NCBI GenBank assembly: GCA_977017575.1
Contig: CDRNVI010000203.1
Coordinates: 62,106-126,105 of the forward strand
DNA length: 64,000 nt
Direction: 5' to 3'
Origin: Paramoeba atlantica
Taxonomy: Eukaryota > Protista > Discosea
Shown one piece after another: positions 1 to 58,903 of this stretch; within the stretch, counting starts at the first letter, position 1, and each line of letters opens with the position of its first letter. The notes beneath the pieces were generated by a model. The model searched no databases, was not told the DNA's origin, and saw nothing but the letters and a program-made list of their open reading frames with translations. The position numbers and the translations under genes are program-made.

Positions 1-181
1 AGAATCGCAATGGAAATTATTATGAAACAAGTTTTAATAATTCAAACTTAAGTTTGAACTCGAGTTATAAAATTTTAATAACATTAATATATACTTTTAA
101 ATAACTTCTATAATTAATTCAAAAGAGAATTTATAATTATGAACTTATAAAACTATATTTAATGATTTAAAAATTTAATAA

Positions 182-291
182 CTTGTTCTAATGTTTTCAA
201 TGTAATACGATATTTACGATATATGATCTTCTTTGTTCCAAAATCAGATGTTGATTATCGTACATTCTTATTACATGAAAACAAAGAACAG
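182..291 (-). ncRNA. Large hairpin module, minus-oriented, allele A (same offset in all A units)
   Basis: Reverse complement of the conserved core GTTTTCATGTAATAAGAATGTACGATAATCAACATCTGATTTT; GTTTTC 193-198 pairs with GAAAAC 277-282; short complementary arms. RNA status is inferred. Confidence 0.45.
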
Positions 292-702
292 CTACGGATA
301 AGAACTGAAATGCCTTCCATATACCGAGATACTTTAAATTGATTATAGATAAATTTTCTAAAATATTTAATTACAAAAATAATTTAAAATATTATTTACA
401 AAACTTATAAATATAATCAATAAAAGTATACGTTATAAAGGAGCGCATAGTTCCTATCACTTTTAAATACGCTATTTTCCTTGATAAAAAAAATCACTGG
501 AAAATTAGCAGTCTTTAAAGAACTTCGATACAAAAAAGTATCTTGACAATCTCTGTTGTTTTTGTTACAAAAAAATAGTAAATAACTTCAAACATATATA
601 CAAAATTAAACGTGTATAAAAAAAGAAAAACATACACTTTGATACATTCAATCAAAAAAGATCTCAATCATGTATCATTAACTTTAGCATATATGTAAGA
701 AG

Positions 703-849
703 TTCCTTGGTGATTAATTCTTTTACGGTTTTCATGTAATAAACATGTACGATAATCAACATCTGATTTTAACTCAAAGCAGAGTAATCATCGTTAAATA
801 TCGTACAAAAGTTATTACAAAGAAAACTGCTAAGAATTATCATCAGGAA
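703..849 (+). ncRNA. Large hairpin module A1 (same offset in all eight A units)
   Basis: Core 728-827 (GTTTTC/GAAAAC, TGTAATAA/TTATTACA, TGTACGATA/TATCGTACA); arm TTCCTTGGTGATTAATTCTT pairs imperfectly with AAGAATTATCATCAGGAA. Confidence 0.55.
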
Positions 850-1240
850 ATTGCACTAAGATTTCCTTCAGAAATTCAAGTACAAATATCCGCTTAACTT
901 ATAAAAAGATATAAGTAGCTTCTATATATATTTTTTTATCGAAAAAACGATAAATAAATAAAGATCATGATAAGATTTCTACGAAATTCAATCATGAAGC
1001 ATACACTATAGTGTATGCAAATTATTACAAAAATAATAATTTTAAAATTTTTTTCTTCGTAATTCAAAGAAGAATTTACTTGAAAAAAAATATAAATTTT
1101 AATGTTTTCGTGTTTAACTACAACTTAAATTTATATATATTTCGTTAAATTAAGAGAATAATTAAACGAAACTGTTACTCGGCAAAAATAAGGGAATTTT
1201 TGAGTAACAGACCGTTCAAATTGAAAACAAAAAAACAATT

Positions 1241-1461
1241 TGCACGGCAATTCTTGGGGTTTTTACGCCTCACGGCTTCGTGATCGGACTAAAGAGCAGT
1301 AGCGAGAGCAAGAAAGTTTGCAGGGGTAGTTGAGTTAGCTATTCCCGGTGGTAGCTAACCTCGATTCCTTAGTCTTTAGTTGTGGTAATTTGGGATAGCG
1401 AAGTAAAATTTTTAAAGTTCGCTATCGACAATTACTATTCTCTTTCATCTTTTGGCGTGCA
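1241..1461 (+). ncRNA. Candidate ~220-nt multi-helix structured RNA, family unknown (one per unit)
   Basis: TGCACG 1241-1246 / CGTGCA 1456-1461; TCACG/CGTGA 1270-1283; CGGACTAAAGA/TCTTTAGTTG; GTTAGCTA/TAGCTAAC 1334-1359; GTGGTAATT/AATTACTAT 1382-1438; GATAGCGAA/TTCGCTATC 1394-1426. Two compensatory pair swaps between alleles. Confidence 0.6.
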
Positions 1462-2489
1462 TTGCTAATTGATCCCAATAGACAATCACATTCAGAAACG
1501 ATCGTAGCTTTACCTATATGTATGTAAAATATCATACATAAGAATCAATAAGATCTGTTTCGTCTCCTCTTTTTTCTTTTAAAATAGCAGGACTAATCTA
1601 TATTATATAATTATTATTCAACTTTTTTAATTATATTTTATCTGCTTGAACACCATAGTTCGATAAAAAATAAATAAAAAGATGAATAAATAACTAAAAA
1701 ATAAAGATAGACAAGAACAAGAATAGTTTAGTTTAATTCCGTGTTAAATCCTCAATCCTTAAGTCGGATTTGTCACTCCATATACGATCAAACTTTATTT
1801 ACTTAAATTTTTACAAAGATAGTAAAATTAAAAGTATAAAGATGATCTAGCTCACCAGTTTTATTTAAATTAAAATCTTACACAATGATTTTATATTTAT
1901 AAACTACTCGCTTCCATCGACCCTCGACTTTGTTGAAGTTTAAGTTTTTGAGTTTACGATATTAAAGAGAAAAAAAATATTATTGCGCTCTATTGGTGGG
2001 GCTTTCGTTAGATTATTAAAAGCTCAACGTCATTGTTCGCGTTTTACGTTACACTCCACAAGCTAAACAAGTGCGTTCTGCCTTAATAATCACTACCCCT
2101 CACCAAAAGGTCGCAATAATATATGTTTTTAGCGTTTAAGATCTGGAGACCATTTTCAAAATAGAAAATGTCAATCGCTTTTTTCTTACGCAAGTACGTC
2201 AAAAAAATCGTTTTTCTCCATGAGCTAAAACGAGTTAGTTCGATCGGGTGTTTTTTGATGCTTTTTTTGGATCGCAGCTTCAACAAAAAAAAATTTCCAC
2301 TGCTGTTTTCCAACAAAGAAAATTATAAAAAAATAATTTTGTTGTTGTCAAATACGATCTTTTAAAATATAAAATTTTTTTTATCGTTATAAATTTTATT
2401 CCAACATAAATTTGTTGGAAAAGTAACAGTAAAAAGTTGTTAATGAAAAAAAATAAATTCATTAACAACAACGTTGATGAAAAATAACA

Positions 2490-2960
2490 ATCAACGCTGT
2501 TAAATTTCCAACAAAATAATGTCAGAAAAAAATTTCTGCCGAAATAATTTAGCTGATTAAATTTTTATCACGACAAAAATATTTTTTTGTTGATCAATTA
2601 AATCGTTATTAACAAAAAAGTTATAACGCTGTTAATTTTCCAACATAAAAATTTTTTATCTCTCAAAAAATATTTTTTGATGTTCAAAGTTATCGTTTGA
2701 TAACAAAAAAGTTATAACGCTGTAACTTTTCCAACAAAAAAATTTTTTTTCGTGTTAAAAATTATTTTTGATCAATAAAAATTATTTTCGATGTTCAAAT
2801 TCATCGTTTGATAACAAAAAAGTTATAACGCTGTTAATTTTCCATCAAAAATTATTTTTTTTGCTTCAAAAATTTTTTTTAACATAAAAATTTATGATGA
2901 TGATTACAAAACCAGTGTTGCAACTCAAAAAAGTTGTTTAACACTGTGAATTTTCCATCA
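2490..2960. repeat. AT-rich degenerate subrepeats (AACAAAAAAGTTATAACGCTGT...TTTTCC)
   Basis: Clear copies at 2611, 2702 and 2813; degenerate copies near 2490 and 2930; present in every unit. Confidence 0.85.
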
Positions 2961-3329
2961 ACATCATAATTTTTATTTAAAAATTTTAATCAAAATCAAT
3001 TTTATAAACATTTTTTGTAAAAAAATTAAAATTTTTACTGGAAAATTACGGTGAGATGCATAAAAATTAGATTTAAACATAAATTTATGCAAACTACCGT
3101 TTAATTTCCAACAAAATTTAAATTTTTTTCATTCAAAAATAGATTTTTTTAATTTTTCGCTGACAAAATTGAAAAAAAATTGAATTTTCATTCAAAAAGT
3201 TGTAAAATTGAGTCTCAGGATGAAAAAGTGGAAAAAGACCACATTTTATCAATTCGACGCTAAATTAGCAAAAAATTTCAATTTCTACACCTAAATGACT
3301 GTAGAAATTGGTGTTTTCCTACAATTTTG

Positions 3330-4070
3330 TGGAAATCCCTGACAAACACTGCTAAATTTCCAACAAAAAGTCAATTTGCAGGTGCTGCCCGTGGATTTTC
3401 CAACAAAATACTAGCAAAACTACTCAAAATGCTATTTTTCCGGCAGAAAACCGTCAAAATCTGCTTTTTCTGGGCAGGAATGACAAAAACGGCCCAAAAA
3501 AGGCCCTGTCATTTTGCCCAAAAACGCAGTATTTTTTCCTGTTCTGGCCTGCAAATTAGCGGATGTCCAAGTGCCCCAAAAAAAGTGACTTGCACTCCGA
3601 GCCGACTCGAAAAGTCGTATTTTCCGGCAGAAACGAAAAAATATGCCACATTTTGTCCGACGATTATTTACAACTTTTTCTCGCATCCCATCATAGCGAT
3701 TTTGCGGATCTGCAGGTTGGGAGGGAGCCAACTGCATTTTTTGGCCGTTTTGAACCCGTTTTGTAAAAAATCGCATATATAAACTCCTTAATTTCCCCTC
3801 AGAAATCTGCCACTTTTGGAGACCAAAAAGTGTTTTGCAGAATCTAAAGTGGAAAATAGGAGTTTTTTGACCCGATTTTGTGAACAAAACTGGCATCAAA
3901 AACTATTCCAAATGCTCCAATCCGAATTTCAGCTATTGAACACTAAAAATGCTGAAAATCGCTATTTCGCACTGGAATTCCGCCAAAACTCCTTTTCAAT
4001 GCGTATTTTGGGCGAGAAAACCGTCGATTTTATAATTTTTAAACTTTTTTTTGTATAATTTATCATTTTT
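3330..4070. other. GC-richer domain with nested inverted repeats (in every unit; cut short in unit 12)
   Basis: GGGCAGGAATGACA 3472-3485 / TGTCATTTTGCCC 3507-3519; CAAAAACGGCCCAAAAAA 3484-3501 / TTTTTTGGCCGTTTTG 3737-3752; TTTTCCGGCAGAAA occurs twice. Confidence 0.6.
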
Positions 4071-4715
4071 AGCGCGGATTTCTATAATTTCTCGCATAAT
4101 TTATTAGTTTTATAGCGTTGTAGTTAAAATTTTCATAATTTTATCATCAAAGTCATCATTTTTCTATAATTTCAAACAAAATTATTAAAAAAAATGTTGT
4201 CTCAGACGAAAAAATTGCATGAAAGTTGTTAAACAACACTAAAACTAAAAAAATATCCCGCAGAAATTAAAAAACCGTGATAAAAATTTATAAATTCAAA
4301 AGAAAAATTTAAAAATCTTAAAAATTTATGATGAAATCATCTTCTTTGTACCAAAATCAGATGTAAACATCAAAAAATTTTTTTAAAATCACTAGTTGAA
4401 ACCATCGTCTATGGTTTCTTTTGTTAATGATCAATGTTTTCATTTCATTCATAACATTTTCACGTTAACTTCGTTCAACTAACTTGAATTTTATTAAAAT
4501 TATGATTCATAAAATAATTTTTTCATTGCTAAAAATAGAATCGCAATGGAAATTATTATGAAACAAGTTTTAATAATTCAAACTTAAGTTTGAACTCGAG
4601 TTATAAAATTTTATAAATTTAAATTATAATTTCAATCATTTCTATAATTAATTCAATAGAGAATTTATAATTATGAAACTATGAAACTATATTTAATGAT
4701 TTAAAATTTAATAAT

Positions 4716-4845
4716 CCCTGTATGTGTTCTTTATGTTTTCAATGTCTGATGATATGTTCGATATATCATCTTCTTTGTACCAAAATCAGATGTTGATTAT
4801 CGTACATTCTTATTACATGAAAACAAAAAAGAACATACAACAGGG
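4716..4845 (-). ncRNA. Large hairpin module, minus-oriented, allele B (also 9372-9501)
   Basis: CCCTGTATGTGTTCTTTATGTTTTC pairs with GAAAACAAAAAAGAACATACAACAGGG around the reverse-complement core. Confidence 0.5.
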
Positions 4846-4969
4846 AAATACTAAGATACTTTAATAACTATTATGTATATAAATTGATCGAATATATAAT
4901 TACAAAAATAATTTAAAATATTCAATAATATTAAATATATATAGTTATTAAAGTGATCTTGTATCCTAG

Positions 4970-5112
4970 TTCATGTCGATTCTTTTAGGTTTTCATGTAA
5001 TAAGAATGTACGATAATCAACATCTGATTTTGACTCAAAGTAGAGTAATCATCGTTAAATATCAGTACAAAACTTATTACAAAGAAAACAACTAATAAAG
5101 CATCGACATGAA
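4970..5112 (+). ncRNA. Large hairpin module B1 (also 9626-9768)
   Basis: Core 4989-5089; arms TTCATGTCGAT / ATCGACATGAA form 11 perfect pairs. Confidence 0.55.
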
Positions 5113-5113
5113 A

Positions 5114-5654
5114 TTCTGCTAAGATTTCTACGAAATTCAAGCAGAAAATTACACTAAGATTTCCTATAGAAATTCAAGTGTAAACAAACATTAGTATTGC
5201 AAAAACAATCTATGTTTGTATTAAAAAAAACACATCTAGAACAATATAATATAAATCAATAAAAATATTTAATTACAAAAATAATATAAAATATAATTTA
5301 TAAATTTATTATTAAAATGATCTAGATGAACATATTCCTGGGTATTCTAATGTGGTTTTCATGTAATAAACATGTACGATAATCAACATCTGATTTTGAC
5401 TCAAAGTAGAGTAATCATCGTTAAATATCGTATAAAGTTTATTAATAATAAAACCACAAAGGAATCCAAGGAATAATTATGCTAAGATTTATACTAAATT
5501 CAAGCATAAGATTGCACTAAGATTTCCTTCAGAAATTCAAGTGCAAATATCCGCTCAACTTATAAAATATAAGTGGCGTCTATATATTTAATCATTACAA
5601 AAATAATGAATTAAATAGATCATGATAAGATTTTTTACAAAAATTCAATCATGA
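5114..5654. other. Cluster of five small internal-loop hairpins in allele B (N7-AA-GATTT...AAATT-CA-N7'); two copies each in alleles A and C
   Basis: 5114-5146, 5149-5183, 5477-5509, 5512-5546, 5620-5654; A: 851-885, 965-997; C: 32927-32961, 33039-33071. Confidence 0.8.
5333..5475 (+). ncRNA. Large hairpin module B2 (also 9989-10131)
   Basis: Core from 5355; arm TATTCCTGGGTATTCTAATGTGG pairs with CCACAAAGGAATCCAAGGAATA. Confidence 0.55.
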
Positions 5655-8600
5655 AGCATACACTATAGTGTATGCAAATTATTACAAAAATAATAATTTT
5701 AAAATTTTTTCTTCGAAATTCAAAGAAGAATTTATTCGAAAAAAATATAAATTTTAATGTTTACGTGTTTAACTACAACTTAAATTTATATATATTTCGT
5801 TAAATTAAGAGAATAATTAAACGAAACTGTTACTCGGCAAAAATAAGGGAATTTTTGAGTAACAGACCGTTCAAATTGAAAACAAAAAAACAATTTGCAC
5901 GGCAATTCTTGGGGTTTTTACGCCTCACGGCTTCGTGATTGGACTAAAGAGCAGGAGCGAGAGCAAGAAAGTTTGCAGGGGTAGTTGAGTTAGCTATTCC
6001 CGGTGGTAGCTAACCTCGATTCCTTAGTCTTTAGTTGTGATAATTTGGGATAGCGAAGTAAAATTTTTAAAGTTCGCTATCGACAATTATTGTTCTCTTT
6101 CATCTTTTGGCGTGCATTGCTAATTGATCCCAATAGACAATCACATTCAGAAATGATCGTTGCTATCCCTATATGTATGTAAAATATCATACATAAGAAT
6201 CAATAAGATCTATTTCGTCTCCTCTTTTTTCTTTTAAAATAGCAGGACTAATCTATATTATATAGTTATTATTCAACTTTTTTAATTATATTTTATCTGC
6301 TTGAACACCATAGTTCGATAAAAAATAAATAAAAAGATGAATAAATAACTAAAAAATAAAGATAGACAAGAACAAGAATAGTTTAGTTTAATTCCGTGTT
6401 AAATCCTCAATCCTTAAGTCGGATTTGTCACTCCATATACGATCAAACTTTATTTACTTAAATTTTTACAAAGATAGTAAAATTAAAAGTATAAAGATGA
6501 TCTAGCTCACCAGTTTTATTTAAATTAAAATCTTACACAATGATTTTATATTTATAAACTACTCGCTTCCATCGACCCTCGACTTTGTTGAAGTTTGAGT
6601 TTTTGAGTTTACGATATTAAAGAGAAAAAAAATATTATTGCGCTCTATTGGTGGGGCTTTCGTTAGATTATTAAAAGCTCAACGTCATTGTTCGCGTTTT
6701 ACGTTACACTCCACAAGCTAAACAAGTGCGTTCTGCCTTAATAATCACTACCCCTCACCAAAAGGTCGCAATAATATATGTTTTTAGCGTTTAAGATCTG
6801 GAGACCATTTTCAAAATAGAAAATGTCAATCGCTTTTTTCTTACGCAAGTACGTCAAAAAAATCGTTTTTCTCCATGAGCTAAAACGAGTTAGTTCGATC
6901 GGGCTTTTTTTGATGCTTTTTTTGGATCGCAGCTTCAACAAAAAAAAATTTCTGCTGCTGTTTTCCAACAAAGAAAATTATAAAAAAATAATTTTGTTGT
7001 TGTCAAATACGATCTTTTAAAATATAAAATTTTTTTTATCGTTATAAATTTTATTCCAACATAAATTTGTTGGAAAAGTAACAGTAAAAAGTTGTTAATG
7101 AAAAAAAATAAATTCATTAACAACAACGTTGATGAAAAATATCAATCAACGCTGTTAAATTTCCAACAAAATAATGTCAGAAAAAAATTTCTGCCGAAAT
7201 AATTTAGCTGATTAAATTTTTATCACGACAAAAATATTTTTTTGTGGATCAATTAAATCGTTATTAACAAAAAAGTTATAACGCTGTTAATTTTCCAACC
7301 TAAAAATTTTTTATCTCTCAAAAAATATTTTTTGATGTTCAAAGTTATCGTTTGATAACAAAAAAGTTATAACGCTGTAACTTTTCCAACAAAAAAAATT
7401 TTTTTTCGTGTTAAAAATTATTTTTGATCAATAAAAATTATTTTCGATGTTCAAATTCATCGTTTGATAACAAAAAAGTTATAACGCTGTTAATTTTCCA
7501 TCAAAAATTATTTTTTTTGCTTCAAAAATTTTTTTTAACATAAAAATTTATGATGATGATTACAAAACCAGTGTTGCAACTCAAAAAAGTTGTTTAACAC
7601 TGTGAATTTTCCATCAACATCATAATTTTTATTTAAAAATTTTAATCAAAATCAATTTTATAAACATTTTTTGTAAAAAAATTAAAATTTTTACTGGAAA
7701 ATTACGGTGAGATGCATAAAAATTAGATTTAAACATAAATTTATGCAAACTACCGTTTAATTTCCAACAAAATTTAAATTTTTTTCATTCAAAAATAGAT
7801 TTTTTTAATTTTTCGCTGACAAAATTGAAAAAAAATTGAATTTTCATTCAAAAAGTTGTAAAATTGAGTCTCAGGATGAAAAAGTGGAAAAAGACCACAT
7901 TTTATCAATTCGACGCTAAATTAGCAAAAAATTTCAATTTCTACACCTAAATGACTGTAGAAATTGGTGTTTTCCTACAATTTTGTGGAAATCCCTGACA
8001 AACACTGCTAAATTTCCAACAAAAAGTCAATTTGCAGGTGCTGCCCGTGGATTTTCCAACAAAATACTAGCAAAACTACTCAAAATGCTATTTTTCCGGC
8101 AGAAAACCGTCAAAATCTGCTTTTTCTGGGCAGGAATGACAAAAACGGCCCAAAAAAGGCCCTGTCATTTTGCCCAAAAACGCAGTATTTTTTCCTGTTC
8201 TGGCCTGCAAATTAGCGGATGTCCAAGTGCCCCAAAAAAAGTGACTTGCACTCCGAGCCGACTCGAAAAGTCGTATTTTCCGGCAGAAACGAAAAAATAT
8301 GCCACATTTTGTCCGACGATTATTTACAACTTTTTCTCGCATCCCATCATAGCGATTTTGCGGATCTGCAGGTTGGGAGGGAGCCAACTGCATTTTTTGG
8401 CCGTTTTGAACCCGTTTTGTAAAAAATCGCATATATAAACTCCTTAATTTCCCCTCAGAAATCTGCCACTTTTGGAGACCAAAAAGTGTTTTGCAGAATC
8501 TAAAGTGGAAAATAGGAGTTTTTTGACCCGATTTTGTGAACAAAACTGGCATCAAAAACTATTCCAAATGCTCCAATCCGAATTTCAGCTATTGAACACT

Positions 8601-9192: not shown

Positions 9193-12100
9193 AGAATCGC
9201 AATGGAAATTATTATGAAACAAGTTTTAATAATTCAAACTTAAGTTTGAACTCGAGTTATAAAATTTTATAAATTTAAATTATAATTTCAATCATTTCTA
9301 TAATTAATTCAATAGAGAATTTATAATTATGAAACTATGAAACTATATTTAATGATTTAAAATTTAATAATCCCTGTATGTGTTCTTTATGTTTTCAATG
9401 TCTGATGATATGTTCGATATATCATCTTCTTTGTACCAAAATCAGATGTTGATTATCGTACATTCTTATTACATGAAAACAAAAAAGAACATACAACAGG
9501 GAAATACTAAGATACTTTAATAACTATTATGTATATAAATTGATCGAATATATAATTACAAAAATAATTTAAAATATTCAATAATATTAAATATATATAG
9601 TTATTAAAGTGATCTTGTATCCTAGTTCATGTCGATTCTTTTAGGTTTTCATGTAATAAGAATGTACGATAATCAACATCTGATTTTGACTCAAAGTAGA
9701 GTAATCATCGTTAAATATCAGTACAAAACTTATTACAAAGAAAACAACTAATAAAGCATCGACATGAAATTCTGCTAAGATTTCTACGAAATTCAAGCAG
9801 AAAATTACACTAAGATTTCCTATAGAAATTCAAGTGTAAACAAACATTAGTATTGCAAAAACAATCTATGTTTGTATTAAAAAAAACACATCTAGAACAA
9901 TATAATATAAATCAATAAAAATATTTAATTACAAAAATAATATAAAATATAATTTATAAATTTATTATTAAAATGATCTAGATGAACATATTCCTGGGTA
10001 TTCTAATGTGGTTTTCATGTAATAAACATGTACGATAATCAACATCTGATTTTGACTCAAAGTAGAGTAATCATCGTTAAATATCGTATAAAGTTTATTA
10101 ATAATAAAACCACAAAGGAATCCAAGGAATAATTATGCTAAGATTTATACTAAATTCAAGCATAAGATTGCACTAAGATTTCCTTCAGAAATTCAAGTGC
10201 AAATATCCGCTCAACTTATAAAATATAAGTGGCGTCTATATATTTAATCATTACAAAAATAATGAATTAAATAGATCATGATAAGATTTTTTACAAAAAT
10301 TCAATCATGAAGCATACACTATAGTGTATGCAAATTATTACAAAAATAATAATTTTAAAATTTTTTCTTCGAAATTCAAAGAAGAATTTATTCGAAAAAA
10401 ATATAAATTTTAATGTTTACGTGTTTAACTACAACTTAAATTTATATATATTTCGTTAAATTAAGAGAATAATTAAACGAAACTGTTACTCGGCAAAAAT
10501 AAGGGAATTTTTGAGTAACAGACCGTTCAAATTGAAAACAAAAAAACAATTTGCACGGCAATTCTTGGGGTTTTTACGCCTCACGGCTTCGTGATTGGAC
10601 TAAAGAGCAGGAGCGAGAGCAAGAAAGTTTGCAGGGGTAGTTGAGTTAGCTATTCCCGGTGGTAGCTAACCTCGATTCCTTAGTCTTTAGTTGTGATAAT
10701 TTGGGATAGCGAAGTAAAATTTTTAAAGTTCGCTATCGACAATTATTGTTCTCTTTCATCTTTTGGCGTGCATTGCTAATTGATCCCAATAGACAATCAC
10801 ATTCAGAAATGATCGTTGCTATCCCTATATGTATGTAAAATATCATACATAAGAATCAATAAGATCTATTTCGTCTCCTCTTTTTTCTTTTAAAATAGCA
10901 GGACTAATCTATATTATATAGTTATTATTCAACTTTTTTAATTATATTTTATCTGCTTGAACACCATAGTTCGATAAAAAATAAATAAAAAGATGAATAA
11001 ATAACTAAAAAATAAAGATAGACAAGAACAAGAATAGTTTAGTTTAATTCCGTGTTAAATCCTCAATCCTTAAGTCGGATTTGTCACTCCATATACGATC
11101 AAACTTTATTTACTTAAATTTTTACAAAGATAGTAAAATTAAAAGTATAAAGATGATCTAGCTCACCAGTTTTATTTAAATTAAAATCTTACACAATGAT
11201 TTTATATTTATAAACTACTCGCTTCCATCGACCCTCGACTTTGTTGAAGTTTGAGTTTTTGAGTTTACGATATTAAAGAGAAAAAAAATATTATTGCGCT
11301 CTATTGGTGGGGCTTTCGTTAGATTATTAAAAGCTCAACGTCATTGTTCGCGTTTTACGTTACACTCCACAAGCTAAACAAGTGCGTTCTGCCTTAATAA
11401 TCACTACCCCTCACCAAAAGGTCGCAATAATATATGTTTTTAGCGTTTAAGATCTGGAGACCATTTTCAAAATAGAAAATGTCAATCGCTTTTTTCTTAC
11501 GCAAGTACGTCAAAAAAATCGTTTTTCTCCATGAGCTAAAACGAGTTAGTTCGATCGGGCTTTTTTTGATGCTTTTTTTGGATCGCAGCTTCAACAAAAA
11601 AAAATTTCTGCTGCTGTTTTCCAACAAAGAAAATTATAAAAAAATAATTTTGTTGTTGTCAAATACGATCTTTTAAAATATAAAATTTTTTTTATCGTTA
11701 TAAATTTTATTCCAACATAAATTTGTTGGAAAAGTAACAGTAAAAAGTTGTTAATGAAAAAAAATAAATTCATTAACAACAACGTTGATGAAAAATATCA
11801 ATCAACGCTGTTAAATTTCCAACAAAATAATGTCAGAAAAAAATTTCTGCCGAAATAATTTAGCTGATTAAATTTTTATCACGACAAAAATATTTTTTTG
11901 TGGATCAATTAAATCGTTATTAACAAAAAAGTTATAACGCTGTTAATTTTCCAACCTAAAAATTTTTTATCTCTCAAAAAATATTTTTTGATGTTCAAAG
12001 TTATCGTTTGATAACAAAAAAGTTATAACGCTGTAACTTTTCCAACAAAAAAAATTTTTTTTCGTGTTAAAAATTATTTTTGATCAATAAAAATTATTTT

Positions 12101-27463: not shown

Positions 27464-30400
27464 AGAATCGCAATGGAAATTATTATGAAACAAGTTTTAA
27501 TAATTCAAACTTAAGTTTGAACTCGAGTTATAAAATTTTAATAACATTAATATATACTTTTAAATAACTTCTATAATTAATTCAAAAGAGAATTTATAAT
27601 TATGAACTTATAAAACTATATTTAATGATTTAAAAATTTAATAACTTGTTCTAATGTTTTCAATGTAATACGATATTTACGATATATGATCTTCTTTGTT
27701 CCAAAATCAGATGTTGATTATCGTACATTCTTATTACATGAAAACAAAGAACAGCTACGGATAAGAACTGAAATGCCTTCCATATACCGAGATACTTTAA
27801 ATTGATTATAGATAAATTTTCTAAAATATTTAATTACAAAAATAATTTAAAATATTATTTACAAAACTTATAAATATAATCAATAAAAGTATACGTTATA
27901 AAGGAGCGCATAGTTCCTATCACTTTTAAATACGCTATTTTCCTTGATAAAAAAAATCACTGGAAAATTAGCAGTCTTTAAAGAACTTCGATACAAAAAA
28001 GTATCTTGACAATCTCTGTTGTTTTTGTTACAAAAAAATAGTAAATAACTTCAAACATATATACAAAATTAAACGTGTATAAAAAAAGAAAAACATACAC
28101 TTTGATACATTCAATCAAAAAAGATCTCAATCATGTATCATTAACTTTAGCATATATGTAAGAAGTTCCTTGGTGATTAATTCTTTTACGGTTTTCATGT
28201 AATAAACATGTACGATAATCAACATCTGATTTTAACTCAAAGCAGAGTAATCATCGTTAAATATCGTACAAAAGTTATTACAAAGAAAACTGCTAAGAAT
28301 TATCATCAGGAAATTGCACTAAGATTTCCTTCAGAAATTCAAGTACAAATATCCGCTTAACTTATAAAAAGATATAAGTAGCTTCTATATATATTTTTTT
28401 ATCGAAAAAACGATAAATAAATAAAGATCATGATAAGATTTCTACGAAATTCAATCATGAAGCATACACTATAGTGTATGCAAATTATTACAAAAATAAT
28501 AATTTTAAAATTTTTTTCTTCGTAATTCAAAGAAGAATTTACTTGAAAAAAAATATAAATTTTAATGTTTTCGTGTTTAACTACAACTTAAATTTATATA
28601 TATTTCGTTAAATTAAGAGAATAATTAAACGAAACTGTTACTCGGCAAAAATAAGGGAATTTTTGAGTAACAGACCGTTCAAATTGAAAACAAAAAAACA
28701 ATTTGCACGGCAATTCTTGGGGTTTTTACGCCTCACGGCTTCGTGATCGGACTAAAGAGCAGTAGCGAGAGCAAGAAAGTTTGCAGGGGTAGTTGAGTTA
28801 GCTATTCCCGGTGGAAGCTAACCTCGATTCTTTAGTCTTTAGTTGTGGTAATTTGGGATAGTGAAGTAAAATTTTTAAAGTTCACTATCGACAATTACTA
28901 TTCTCTTTCATCTTTTGGCGTGCATTGCTAATTGATCCCAATAGACAATCACATTCAGAAATGATCGTTGCTATCCCTATATGTATGTAAAATATCATAC
29001 ATAAGAATCAATAAGATCTATTTCGTCTCCTCTTTCATCCTTTTAACATAGCAAGACTAATCTATATTATATAATTATTATTCAACTTTTTTAATTATAT
29101 TTTATCTGCTTGAACACCATAGTTCGATAAAAAATAAATAAAAAGATGAATAAATAACTAAAAAATAAAGATAGACAAGAACAAGAATAGTTTAGTTTAA
29201 TTCCGTGTTAAATCCTCAATCCTTAAGTCGGATTTGTCACTCCATATACGATCAAACTTTATTTACTTAAATTTTTACAAAGATAGTAAAATTAAAAGTA
29301 TAAAGATGATCTAGCTCACCAGTTTTATTTAAATTAAAATCTTACACAATGATTTTATATTTATAAACTACTCGCTTCCATCGACCCTCGACTTTGTTGA
29401 AGTTTAAGTTTTTGAGTTTACGATATTAAAGAGAAAAAAAATATTATTGCGCTCTATTGGTGGGGCTTTCGTTAAATTATTAAAAGCTCAACGTCATTGT
29501 TCGCGTTTTACGTTACACTCCACAAGCTAAACAAGTGCGTTCTGCCTTAATAATCACTACCCCTCACCAAAAGGTCGCAATAATATATGTTTTTAGCGTT
29601 TAAGATCTGGAGACCATTTTCAAAATAGAAAATGTCAATCGCTTTTTTCTTACGCAAGTACGTCAAAAAAATCGTTTTTCTCCATGAGCTAAAACGAGTT
29701 AGTTCGATCGGGCTTTTTTTGATGCTTTTTTTGGATCGCAGCTTCAACAAAAAAAAATTTCCGCTGCTGTTTTCCAACAAAGAAAATTATAAAAAAATAA
29801 TTTTGTTGTTGTCAAATACGATCTTTTAAAATATAAAATTTTTTTTATCGTTATAAATTTTATTCCGACATAAATTTGTTGGAAAAGTAACAGTAAAAAG
29901 TTGTTAATGAAAAAAAAATAAATTCATTAACAACAACGTTGATGAAAAATAACAATCAACGCTGTTAAATTTCCAACAAAATAATGTCAGAAAAAAATTT
30001 CTGCCGAAATAATTTAGCTGATTAAATTTTTATCACGACAAAAATATTTTTTTGTTGATCAATTAAATCGTTATTAACAAAAAAGTTATAACGCTGTTAA
30101 TTTTCCAACATAAAAATTTTTTATCTCTCAAAAAATATTTTTTGATGTTCAAAGTTATCGTTTGATAACAAAAAAGTTATAACGCTGTAACTTTTCCAAC
30201 AAAAAAAATTTTTTTTCGTGTTAAAAATTATTTTTGATCAATAAAAATTATTTTCGATGTTCAAATTCATCGTTTGATAACAAAAAAGTTATAACGCTGT
30301 TAATTTTCCATCAAAAATTATTTTTTTTGCTTCAAAAATTTTTTTTAACATAAAAATTTATAATGATGATTACAAAATAAGTGTTGCAACTCAAAAAAGT

Positions 30401-50223: not shown

Positions 50224-53200
50224 AAAACCGCAATGGAAATTATTATGAAACAAGTTTTAATAATTCAAACTTAAGTTTGAACTCGAGTTATAAAATTTTA
50301 ATAACATTAATATATACTTTTAAATAACTTCTATAATTAATTCAAAAGAGAATTTATAATTAAGAACTTATAAAACTATATTTAATGATTTAAAACTTAA
50401 TAACTTGTTGTAATGTTTTCAATATAATAATATATTTACGATATATTATCTTCTTTGTTCCAAAATCAGATGTTGATTATCGTACATTCTTATTACATGA
50501 AAACATAACAACATAAAGAATACAATAGGCACTCCTTACATTTAAATGCCCTTAATATAATTTATCGATATATTTAATTACACAAATAATTTAAAATATA
50601 ATTTATAAAATATTAATAAAGTTCATGTAAAATGTAAGAAGTTACCCTAGTTTTCCTGGTATTGTGAGTATGTTTTCATGTAATAAACATGTACGATAAT
50701 CAACATCTGATTTTGACTCAAAGCAGAGTAATCATCGTTAAATATCGTTACAAAGTTATTACAAATAAAACATAAATCACTAATAACAGGAAAATATTAA
50801 ATACAAAAATATTTAATAAACTTCGATGCAAAAAAGCATCTTGACAATCTCTGTGTTTTTGTTAAAAAAAATAGCGTAAAACTACAAAACCATATATATA
50901 AAATGAAAAGTGTATAAAAAAGAAAAGCATACACTTTGATACATTCAATCGAAAAATATCTCAATCATGTATCATTAATTTTAGTATATATGGTAGGAGT
51001 TTTACCTTTACAGTGCTATTAGTCATGTTTTCATGTAATAAGAATGTACGATAATCAACATCTGATTTGCACTCAAAGTAGAGTAATCATCGTTAAATAT
51101 CAGTACAAAGTCATTACAAGAAAACTAAAGATTAAAGCACTGTAAAATTGCACTAAGATTTCCTTCAGAAATTCAAGTGCAAATATCCGCCCAACTTATA
51201 AAATATAAGTGGCGTCTATATATATTTTTTTATCGAAAAAAACGATAAATAAATAAAGATCATGATAAGATTTCTACGAAATTCAATCATGAAGCATACA
51301 CTATAGTGTATGCAAATTATTACAAAAATAATAATTTTAAAATTTTTTCTTCGAAATTCAAAGAAGAATTTATTCGAAAAAAATATAAATTTTAATGTTT
51401 TCGTGTTTAACTACAACTTAAATTTATATATATTTCGTTAAATTAAGAGAATAATTAAACGAAACTGTTACTCGGCAAAAATAAGGGAATTTTTGAGTAA
51501 CAGACCGTTCAAATTGAAAACAAAAAAACAATTTGCACGGCAATTCTTGGGGTTTTTACGCCTCACGGCTTCGTGATTGGACTAAAGAGCAGGAGCGAGA
51601 GCAAGAAAGTTTGCAGGGGTAGTTGAGTTAGCTATTCCCGGTGGAAGCTAACCTCGATTCTTTAGTCTTTAGTTGTGGTAATTTGGGATAGTGAAGTAAA
51701 ATTTTTAAAGTTCACTATCGACAATTACTATTCTCTTTCATCTTTTGGCGTGCATTGCTAATTGATCCCAATAGACAATCACATTCAGAAATGATCGTTG
51801 CTATCCCTATATGTATGTAAAATATCATACATAAGAATCAATAAGATCTATTTCGTCTCCTCTTTCATCCTTTTAACATAGCAAGACTAATCTATATTAT
51901 ATAATTATTATTCAACTTTTTTAATTATATTTTATCTGCTTGAACACCATAGTTCGATAAAAAATAAATAAAAAGATGAATAAATAACTAAAAAATAAAG
52001 ATAGACAAGAACAAGAATAGTTTAGTTTAATTCCGTGTTAAATCCTCAATCCTTAAGTCGGATTTGTCACTCCATATACGATCAAACTTTATTTACTTAA
52101 ATTTTTACAAAGATAGTAAAATTAAAAGTATAAAGATGATCTAGCTCACCAGTTTTATTTAAATTAAAATCTTACACAATGATTTTATATTTATAAACTA
52201 CTCGCTTCCATCGACCCTCGACTTTGTTGAAGTTTAAGTTTTTGAGTTTACGATATTAAAGAGAAAAAAAATATTATTGCGCTCTATTGGTGGGGCTTTC
52301 GTTAAATTATTAAAAGCTCAACGTCATTGTTCGCGTTTTACGTTACACTCCACAAGCTAAACAAGTGCGTTCTGCCTTAATAATCACTACCCCTCACCAA
52401 AAGGTCGCAATAATATATGTTTTTAGCGTTTAAGATCTGGAGACCATTTTCAAAATAGAAAATGTCAATCGCTTTTTTCTTACGCAAGTACGTCAAAAAA
52501 ATCGTTTTTCTCCATGAGCTAAAACGAGTTAGTTCGATCGGGCTTTTTTTGATGCTTTTTTTGGATCGCAGCTTCAACAAAAAAAAATTTCCGCTGCTGT
52601 TTTCCAACAAAGAAAATTATAAAAAAATAATTTTGTTGTTGTCAAATACGATCTTTTAAAATATAAAATTTTTTTTATCGTTATAAATTTTATTCCGACA
52701 TAAATTTGTTGGAAAAGTAACAGTAAAAAGTTGTTAATGAAAAAAAAATAAATTCATTAACAACAACGTTGATGAAAAATAACAATCAACGCTGTTAAAT
52801 TTCCAACAAAATAATGTCAGAAAAAAATTTCTGCCGAAATAATTTAGCTGATTAAATTTTTATCACGACAAAAATATTTTTTTGTTGATCAATTAAATCG
52901 TTATTAACAAAAAAGTTATAACGCTGTTAATTTTCCAACATAAAAATTTTTTATCTCTCAAAAAATATTTTTTGATGTTCAAAGTTATCGTTTGATAACA
53001 AAAAAGTTATAACGCTGTAACTTTTCCAACAAAAAAAATTTTTTTTCGTGTTAAAAATTATTTTTGATCAATAAAAATTATTTTCGATGTTCAAATTCAT
53101 CGTTTGATAACAAAAAAGTTATAACGCTGTTAATTTTCCATCAAAAATTATTTTTTTTGCTTCAAAAATTTTTTTTAACATAAAAATTTATAATGATGAT

Positions 53201-58605: not shown

Positions 58606-58903
58606 TGTGAAGTGGCCAGGAGTTTGGAGAAGGAAAGAGTGGGCAGGTGAAGGAAAGAAGGAAAGGGAAGAAAGGGAAAAGAAAGAAAGAGAAAAGTCAA
58701 GAGCAAATCATGGGAAAGATTGGTGGCGCATTGCAAGGGGAAACCAACCAAGTAAGTTTATTCCTTTTACCAACAAACAAAAGAAGTATTCATATGGGAC
58801 AACAAATATAACAAGTGTGGAATTGACAAGAAGCAAAACAGAATGAAAGACAAAAACACACAAGAAAAAGGACACGGTGGAGAGATTAAATCACAGATAA
58901 ATG
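58606..58903 (+). repeat. Putative 5' LTR (minimum extent; true end not determinable)
   Basis: 298 nt align to 63703-64000 with 7 substitutions; starts with TG; upstream sequences differ. Confidence 0.8.

Follow-up and report, generated by a model that had tools for sequence, protein, structure and literature searches.

A row of hairpins common to a tandem array and a cox3-like molecule in a Paramoeba atlantica assembly: a candidate kinetoplast control or leader module

The stretch at 1241-1461 is part of a longer element, a row of consecutive local hairpins of about 600 bp at 961-1562 of the window (the whole 64-kb stretch that was analysed), and not a closed molecule of 220 nt. The element occurs in a tandem array and in a second, otherwise unalignable molecule on contig C162, and its 3′ hairpins have changed by compensated substitutions while their loops stayed fixed. 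The reading we favour, with a probability of roughly 40%, is that it is a cis-acting control or leader module of the kinetoplast DNA of a Perkinsela-like kinetoplastid. An earlier note had described 1241-1461 as an unassigned structured RNA with compensatory changes between copies. What it observed is real and more than chance, and has been partly confirmed; its reading of the stretch as a structured element of no assigned kind holds in part, but the boundaries, the closing stem and the label ‘RNA gene’ are unsupported.

Twelve copies of the stretch are present in the window, 4538-4656 bp apart and one per tandem unit. The tally for the whole assembly is 38 array copies, on contigs C203 (that of the window, which covers its positions 62106-126105), C233 and C245-C248, plus two copies on C162 that have 85% identity to array 1241-1461. 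The description as a ‘multicopy’ RNA thus holds for the number of copies, but their arrangement as one per 4.5-kb tandem unit is not that of a dispersed gene family. GC content is ~26% over the array (1-54084), in which the flagged module forms a GC-richer island of 42% in DNA of ~25%. The unit is rich in inverted repeats, and within its 4.5 kb there is no convincing ORF, no tRNA detectable with ARAGORN and no Rfam match at the gathering score. Upstream of the module a part of the unit (4569-5746) is hypervariable, with 27-111 variable columns per 250 as well as indels, and gives rise to three unit lengths of 4538, ~4608 and ~4655 bp; compensated changes in hairpin arms are present there also. 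Outside that part, 1323-1572 has 12 variable columns versus 1-10 per 250 elsewhere. Two other stretches of the unit, neither common to C162, stand out by composition: a second GC-richer island (window 1985-2125) closed by the long-range inverted repeat ATTATTGCG...CGCAATAAT, and window 3250-3700, 45% GC, whose minus strand folds 12-19 kcal/mol better than its plus strand.

Contig C162 has a period of 14,868 bp, and its two periods show no difference over 9868 bp, which suggests a circle or concatemer, a circular molecule having been assembled more than once. It carries a frame of 260 codons (L043:3793-4572) that contains eight TGA but neither TAA nor TAG and is collinear with the COX3 that this assembly has from the amoeba (score 89, versus 41.5 +/- 6.8 and a maximum of 75 for shuffles). 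By its TGA pattern and this alignment the frame looks like a divergent cox3 in which TGA is Trp; Pfam and PDB searches with pieces of it returned nothing, and C162 was not among the contigs flagged by PF00510. At the 3′ end of the frame is a G-rich tract, which matches the partly U-edited cox3 reported in Perkinsela (PMC4669381). Since it combines a periodic circle or concatemer with a divergent cox3 using TGA as Trp, C162 appears to be kinetoplast DNA from a Perkinsela-like organism. Contig C215, with a weak COX1 match, was considered as a second kinetoplast contig and rejected, as it has no module and consists of transposon-like repeat DNA.

Between the 4.5-kb unit and C162 only window 961-1555 aligns by BLAST, and the homology block is flanked on both sides by TAAGATC. 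Conservation along it is uneven (Table 1). Its 5′ half (961-1284) is near-invariant, at 96-98% apart from the patch at 1108-1126, and 1285-1562 spans 63-93%. The module is present exactly once per 4.5-kb unit and once per C162 period. A covariance model run over the 45.7-Mb assembly found no copy outside C162 and the array contigs, so the module does not appear to be a conserved region of all the kinetoplast DNA molecules in the assembly.

Table 1. Positions of the array, its copies, the module and its parts (window coordinates unless a contig is named)
Feature	Position	Strand	Remarks
Tandem array	1-54084	+	~12 units of 4538-4656 bp, one module each; ends 54084/54085
221-nt cores, copies 1-6	starts 1241, 5896, 10552, 15090, 19628, 24166	+	array copies
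221-nt cores, copies 7-12	starts 28704, 33313, 37851, 42389, 46927, 51534	+	array copies
TAAGATTT-N4-7-AAATTCAA hairpin sites	840-1000, 5100-5560; C162:11426-11482	+
Conserved module	961-1562	+	sole stretch common to array unit and C162 (C162:11452-12034)
Segment	961-1107		96% identity to C162
Segment	1108-1126		37% identity to C162; replaced patch, forms new perfect hairpin in C162
Segment	1127-1284		98% identity to C162
Segment	1285-1320		89% identity to C162
Segment	1321-1381		66% identity to C162
Segment	1382-1438		93% identity to C162
Segment	1439-1456		78% identity to C162
Segment	1457-1489		82% identity to C162
Segment	1490-1562		63% identity to C162
Hairpin CTGTTACTCG / GAGTAACAG	1172-1210	+	invariant across copies, hence no covariation
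Hairpin CCGT.CAAATTG / CAATTTG.ACGG	1212-1247	+	A-rich loop; invariant; takes up TGCACGG
Two small hairpins (1256-1269, 1270-1283)	1256-1283	+	invariant; stretch contains TTGGGGTTTTTACGCC
Central branched domain, loop TTCCCGGTG	1287-1381	+	array variants 1300, 1352, 1368 inside
Variant site, T/G	1300		loop in minimum-energy fold; U.C or G-C with C1367 in consensus fold
Variant site, C/T	1368		G.U with G1325 in predicted fold
Hairpin III	1382-1438	+	9 bp, internal loop, 9 bp, 15-nt loop
Hairpin IV	1457-1489	+	compensated 1458/1488, 1459/1487, 1463/1484 between array and C162; equal shape in both
Hairpin V	1495-1561	+	outer stem 1495-1503 with 1552-1561

Within the array, 1241-1461 exists as five haplotypes with nine differing sites, and every variant site named in the earlier note was found in the copies. 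Two of the changes are compensated pairs, as had been claimed: G1385-C1435 becomes A6040-T6090, and C1399-G1421 becomes T28862-A28884, with the same replacement at 51692/51714. The change of A1437 to G at 6092 does give U.G with T1383, and that of T1352 to A at 28815 and 51645 does open the loop-closing pair A1341-T1352. A C/T change exists at 1285 too, but the shift from C-G to T.G proposed for it is not supported, as the minimum-energy fold and the consensus fold alike leave 1285 without a partner. The assertion that wobble compatibility is confined to the plus strand stands, as every one-sided stem transition gives G.U on that strand.

Comparison with C162 speaks against a discrete ~220-nt RNA with the proposed ends. 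Two pairs of its closing stem (1241-1250 with 1453-1461) are broken in the C162 copy; the 3′ arm of that stem belongs instead to a local hairpin in which changes on the 5′ side are compensated on the 3′ side (hairpin IV in Table 1). The TGCACGG of the 5′ arm of the closing stem pairs locally with 1212-1218. Array copies of the central domain fold (z -3.1), whereas the C162 copy does not (z +1.2); identity to the latter is only 66% (segment 1321-1381). Hairpins III, IV and V keep their shape in both lineages. In hairpin III there are three compensated pairs, 1385/1435, 1386/1434 and 1399/1421, the second of them contributed by C162 (T1386C with A1434G). The same hairpin has constant G.U pairs at 1382/1438 and 1384/1436 and polymorphic wobbles at 1383/1437 and 1400/1420, and all 19 of its 19 unpaired positions are invariant. 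Array copies of hairpin V have either C-G or T-A at 1499/1557; C162, when folded by itself, restores this pair as G-C, and it has lost part of the inner hairpin (1514-1541).

For the 221-nt alignment the count of compensated pairs is three, a number reached by 7 of 500 shuffles. Extension to a 617-column alignment of the module (five array haplotypes and C162), from which the consensus fold was derived, raises it to nine, against a shuffle mean of 2.4 and maximum of 7 (0 of 1000 reach nine); slid controls gave 0-1 for either alignment. In hairpins III and IV together, 14 of the 64 paired positions vary and none of the 26 unpaired ones (Fisher one-sided p = 0.005): the loops are held in sequence and the stems only in pairing. 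With just two lineages, the array and C162, the covariation rests on few independent events. Compensation beyond chance together with conserved loops is the pattern expected of a functional structured RNA, and the alignment has both; causes at the DNA level may nevertheless have contributed, since hairpin arms are compensated elsewhere in the unit too.

The exact 221 nt fold at -74.0 kcal/mol on the plus strand versus -56.8 on the minus strand. Along the unit it is usually the minus strand that folds better, and 1156-1540 (five overlapping 220-nt segments) is the one sustained stretch where the plus strand does; a lone segment, 1816-2035, behaves likewise. The advantage accompanies a local composition of G>C and T>A and ten G.U pairs, and in hairpins IV and V neither strand folds better than the other. 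The plus strand of the module is the sense strand of the putative cox3 on C162.

Searches for known RNAs bear out the view that no known family is involved. Rfam 15, which covers snRNAs, U3, SRP, RNase P/MRP, 5S, tRNA, group I and II introns and small ribozymes, gave no match at the gathering score in the 64-kb window or in 28 kb of C162. Relaxation of cmscan to E up to 10 over 930-1600 and 1-4700, the check that had been proposed, gave nothing beyond chance-level scores (12-26 bits) for unrelated families of miRNAs, leaders and sRNAs. At that threshold the trypanosomatid 9S and 12S models of the library (RF02545, RF02546) do not match over the module, and RF02546 run across the assembly gave nothing among the 15 of 9017 candidates that were scored. 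Thirteen E. coli-type rRNA motifs, including the 530 loop, the 1400/1492 decoding site, the PTC, the A-loop and the sarcin-ricin loop, were sought with up to 20% mismatch; none is in the unit and C162 has two short chance matches outside the module, though the exclusion is a weak one given how far prokinetoplastid rRNAs have diverged. Three stretches that look like rRNA motifs, ACCTCGAT (PTC-like), AGTAGCGAGAG (sarcin-ricin-like) and GGTAGCTAACC, were rejected as either polymorphic (1300 T/G) or not kept in C162. A spliced-leader RNA array was also rejected, as the window lacks the prokinetoplastid SL motif, which occurs solely on other, nuclear contigs. A protein-coding reading fails for want of ORFs, and indels between copies (-1, -2, +1) break every frame. 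Exact look-up of the ORFs of the unit, and word-based searches with a unit ORF and a piece of the cox3, found no protein. Exact-pattern scans of viral contigs gave nine matches, all from one scan and at chance level (≤12.5 bits with the covariance model), and pattern scans of metagenome contigs and contigs of prokaryote genomes gave no relatives.

These results bear on the possibility that the module is, after all, the gene for a new trans-acting structured mitochondrial RNA, possibly a piece of a mitochondrial rRNA, itself perhaps fragmented, of Perkinsela-type kinetoplastids, tandemly amplified for high expression. Such a gene could be a GC-richer island with a near-invariant 5′ half, covarying helices, invariant loops and a wobble bias on the cox3 sense strand, as is seen here. 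The length of the module, ~600 nt, is close to that of trypanosomatid 9S rRNA; as a candidate RNA it would also resemble the 9S and 12S rRNAs in being mitochondrial, AT-rich and structured. It differs from them in giving no match to their covariance models and in lacking universal SSU and LSU motifs, and its candidate motifs, ACCTCGAT and AGTAGCGAGAG among them, differ between the array and C162 copies. A strongly constrained trans-acting RNA is moreover at odds with a central domain that is unfolded in C162, with polymorphism above the background of the unit and with the absence of the module from other contigs. On balance we regard an RNA gene as possible though unlikely, and its more specific form, in which the module would encode a new prokinetoplastid trans-acting mitochondrial RNA, such as an rRNA piece kept on the cox3 molecule and amplified ~40-fold or more, as very unlikely.

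Structure that is never read provides another way to account for the hairpins. In neutral, palindrome-rich repeat DNA the arms could be kept complementary by hairpin-templated repair, inverted duplication or gene conversion in a homogenising array. The abundance of inverted repeats in the unit, the compensated arms in its hypervariable part (4569-5746), the new perfect hairpin formed in C162 at the patch 1108-1126 and the like folding of hairpins IV and V on both strands are all in keeping with this. Against it, the loops are invariant where the stems change (0/26 versus 14/64), two G.T pairs persist uncorrected in both lineages, and one-sided changes wobble on the plus strand only. The module has also stayed 87-100% identical (37-98% by the segments of Table 1) where the rest of the two molecules is unalignable. 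We consider a neutral origin unlikely.

Assignment of the array to the kinetoplast draws on motif families that it has in common with C162 beyond the module. The motif TTTCCAACA occurs at 1.7 per kb in both the array unit and C162 and at 0-0.11 per kb in six other stretches sampled from nuclear-type, amoeba mitochondrial and bacterial DNA of the same assembly; eight of the nine motifs in the unit are on the plus strand. It recurs, often inside CTGTTAATTTTCCAACAAAA, at spacings of 91 and 112 bp in window 2280-4180 (TRF), and its repeats are also found at C162:10099-14371 and C162:933-2544. These repeats may be guide-RNA-type cassettes or protein-binding sites. A second family, the small hairpin TAAGATTT-N4-7-AAATTCAA, has 113 matches, all on the plus strand, against zero for the minus strand and for the control; of the 100 matches that were listed, every one is on C162 or an array contig. 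For these reasons the array, too, is taken as probable kinetoplast DNA. The assignment is indirect because the array contigs end in unrelated DNA.

From 54085 onward the window is 100% identical to C207 from 57584. Upstream of that point C207 (L054, C207:50000-59000) encodes a Ty3/gypsy-like gag with CCHC knuckles and an RT with YVDD in the standard genetic code. The DNA of window 54-64 kb consists of dispersed repeats that are 81-97% identical on many contigs of 100-300 kb, and as such it was rejected as a candidate pre-edited cryptogene; a T-poor repeat element is found in it at 58607 and 63704, ~5.1 kb apart. On C233 the array stops at about the equivalent of window 1535, with the junction near L068:160-195 (L068 is C233:26000-35638), and the DNA beyond is bacterial, of ~55% GC, with rimP, nusA, ylxR, infB, rbfA and truB (NusA 435 bits, IF-2 800 bits). 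Chimeric assembly of the contig, or fusion to a contaminant, is the probable cause of that join; with two such unrelated partners, nuclear-type transposon DNA for C203 and bacterial genes for C233, the joins look like chimeras of very abundant DNA. The array as a satellite in the nucleus of either the amoeba host or the kinetoplastid, with captured kinetoplast DNA whose hairpins are relics of mitochondrial origin, would suit the transposon repeats that adjoin it on C203 and their relatives on large contigs, but given the chimera-like junctions (C233 continuing into nusA and infB), the motif families common to the array and C162 beyond the module, and the compensated changes that array haplotypes still carry, we give this little credence.

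The control or leader reading takes its support from the near-invariant 5′ half, the compensated 3′ hairpins with fixed loops, the presence of one copy per unit and the fact that this is the sole stretch still alignable between diverged molecules. The invariance of the 5′ half suggests recognition that is specific for sequence. In both settings the module lies just upstream of plus-strand TTTCCAACA cassettes, at 2307-4170 in the array and from 12244 on C162, where the module itself occupies 11452-12034. Putative guide-RNA genes in Perkinsela are preceded by A/C-rich tracts (PMC4669381), and by this likeness the TTTCCAACA cassettes downstream of the module may be guide-RNA-type genes. The module would act as a single-stranded plus strand, either in nascent RNA, where it could affect the start, processing or stability of transcripts, or in displaced DNA, where it could prime replication. 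Its transcription and its control role are both putative. Several points tell against this reading: invariant blocks with covarying helices are also expected of a structural RNA gene, the origin motifs of trypanosomatid minicircles are absent, the module was found only on C162 and the array contigs, the latter end in unrelated DNA, and the covariation comes from two lineages. In the unit neither CSB-1 (GGGCGT), CSB-2 nor CSB-3/UMS (GGGGTTGGTGTA, up to 3 mismatches) was found.

If the module has such a role, the gene-less 4.5-kb array would be an amplified non-coding piece of the cox3 molecule that retained it. An analogy is provided by the ori-bearing petite repeats of yeast, in which short segments are amplified. 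The ori/rep sequences of yeast mitochondrial DNA are clusters of GC-richer hairpins in AT-rich DNA, and ori segments amplify as gene-less tandem repeats in hypersuppressive petites; the vertebrate OriL is a strand-specific stem-loop with a T-run in its loop. The loop of hairpin III, GTAAAATTTTTAAAG, likewise has a T-run, as in strand-specific origin hairpins of these kinds. This is analogy only, as there is no sequence similarity to yeast ori/rep or OriL and both the organism and the replication machinery are different.

Conserved regions are a feature of kinetoplast circles, namely CSB-1/2/3 of trypanosomatid minicircles and those of the maxi- and minicircles of Papus ankaliazontas (PMC7859406). 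In the two molecule types that carry it the module would resemble them as a single short non-coding block, one per molecule or unit, common to a gene-bearing molecule and an abundant gene-less class, in AT-rich DNA and beside putative guide-RNA-type cassettes. Unlike the minicircle regions the module has no CSB-1, CSB-2 or GGGGTTGGTGTA 12-mer and is built of hairpins with compensatory evolution. It is found on two molecule types only, with its units in tandem arrays that are known here from the assembly. At 600 bp it is also far longer than the conserved block of trypanosomatid minicircles, which is ~120-150 bp.

In symbionts of the Perkinsela type the mitochondrial DNA amounts to ~120-250 Mbp although it serves six genes (PMC6334171), and neither their mitochondrial rRNAs nor the elements for replication and expression of that DNA are known (PMC4669381). 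The module is a defined candidate element under structural constraint and the sole link of a molecule that bears a gene to a gene-less unit that is massively repeated. Were it merely palindromic junk, the finding would be an ordinary one; were it an RNA gene, it could belong to the translation apparatus that is missing. As a replicator or a transcription leader it would offer a way into the DNA bloat of these organisms, for instance through selfish amplification of origin-bearing fragments.
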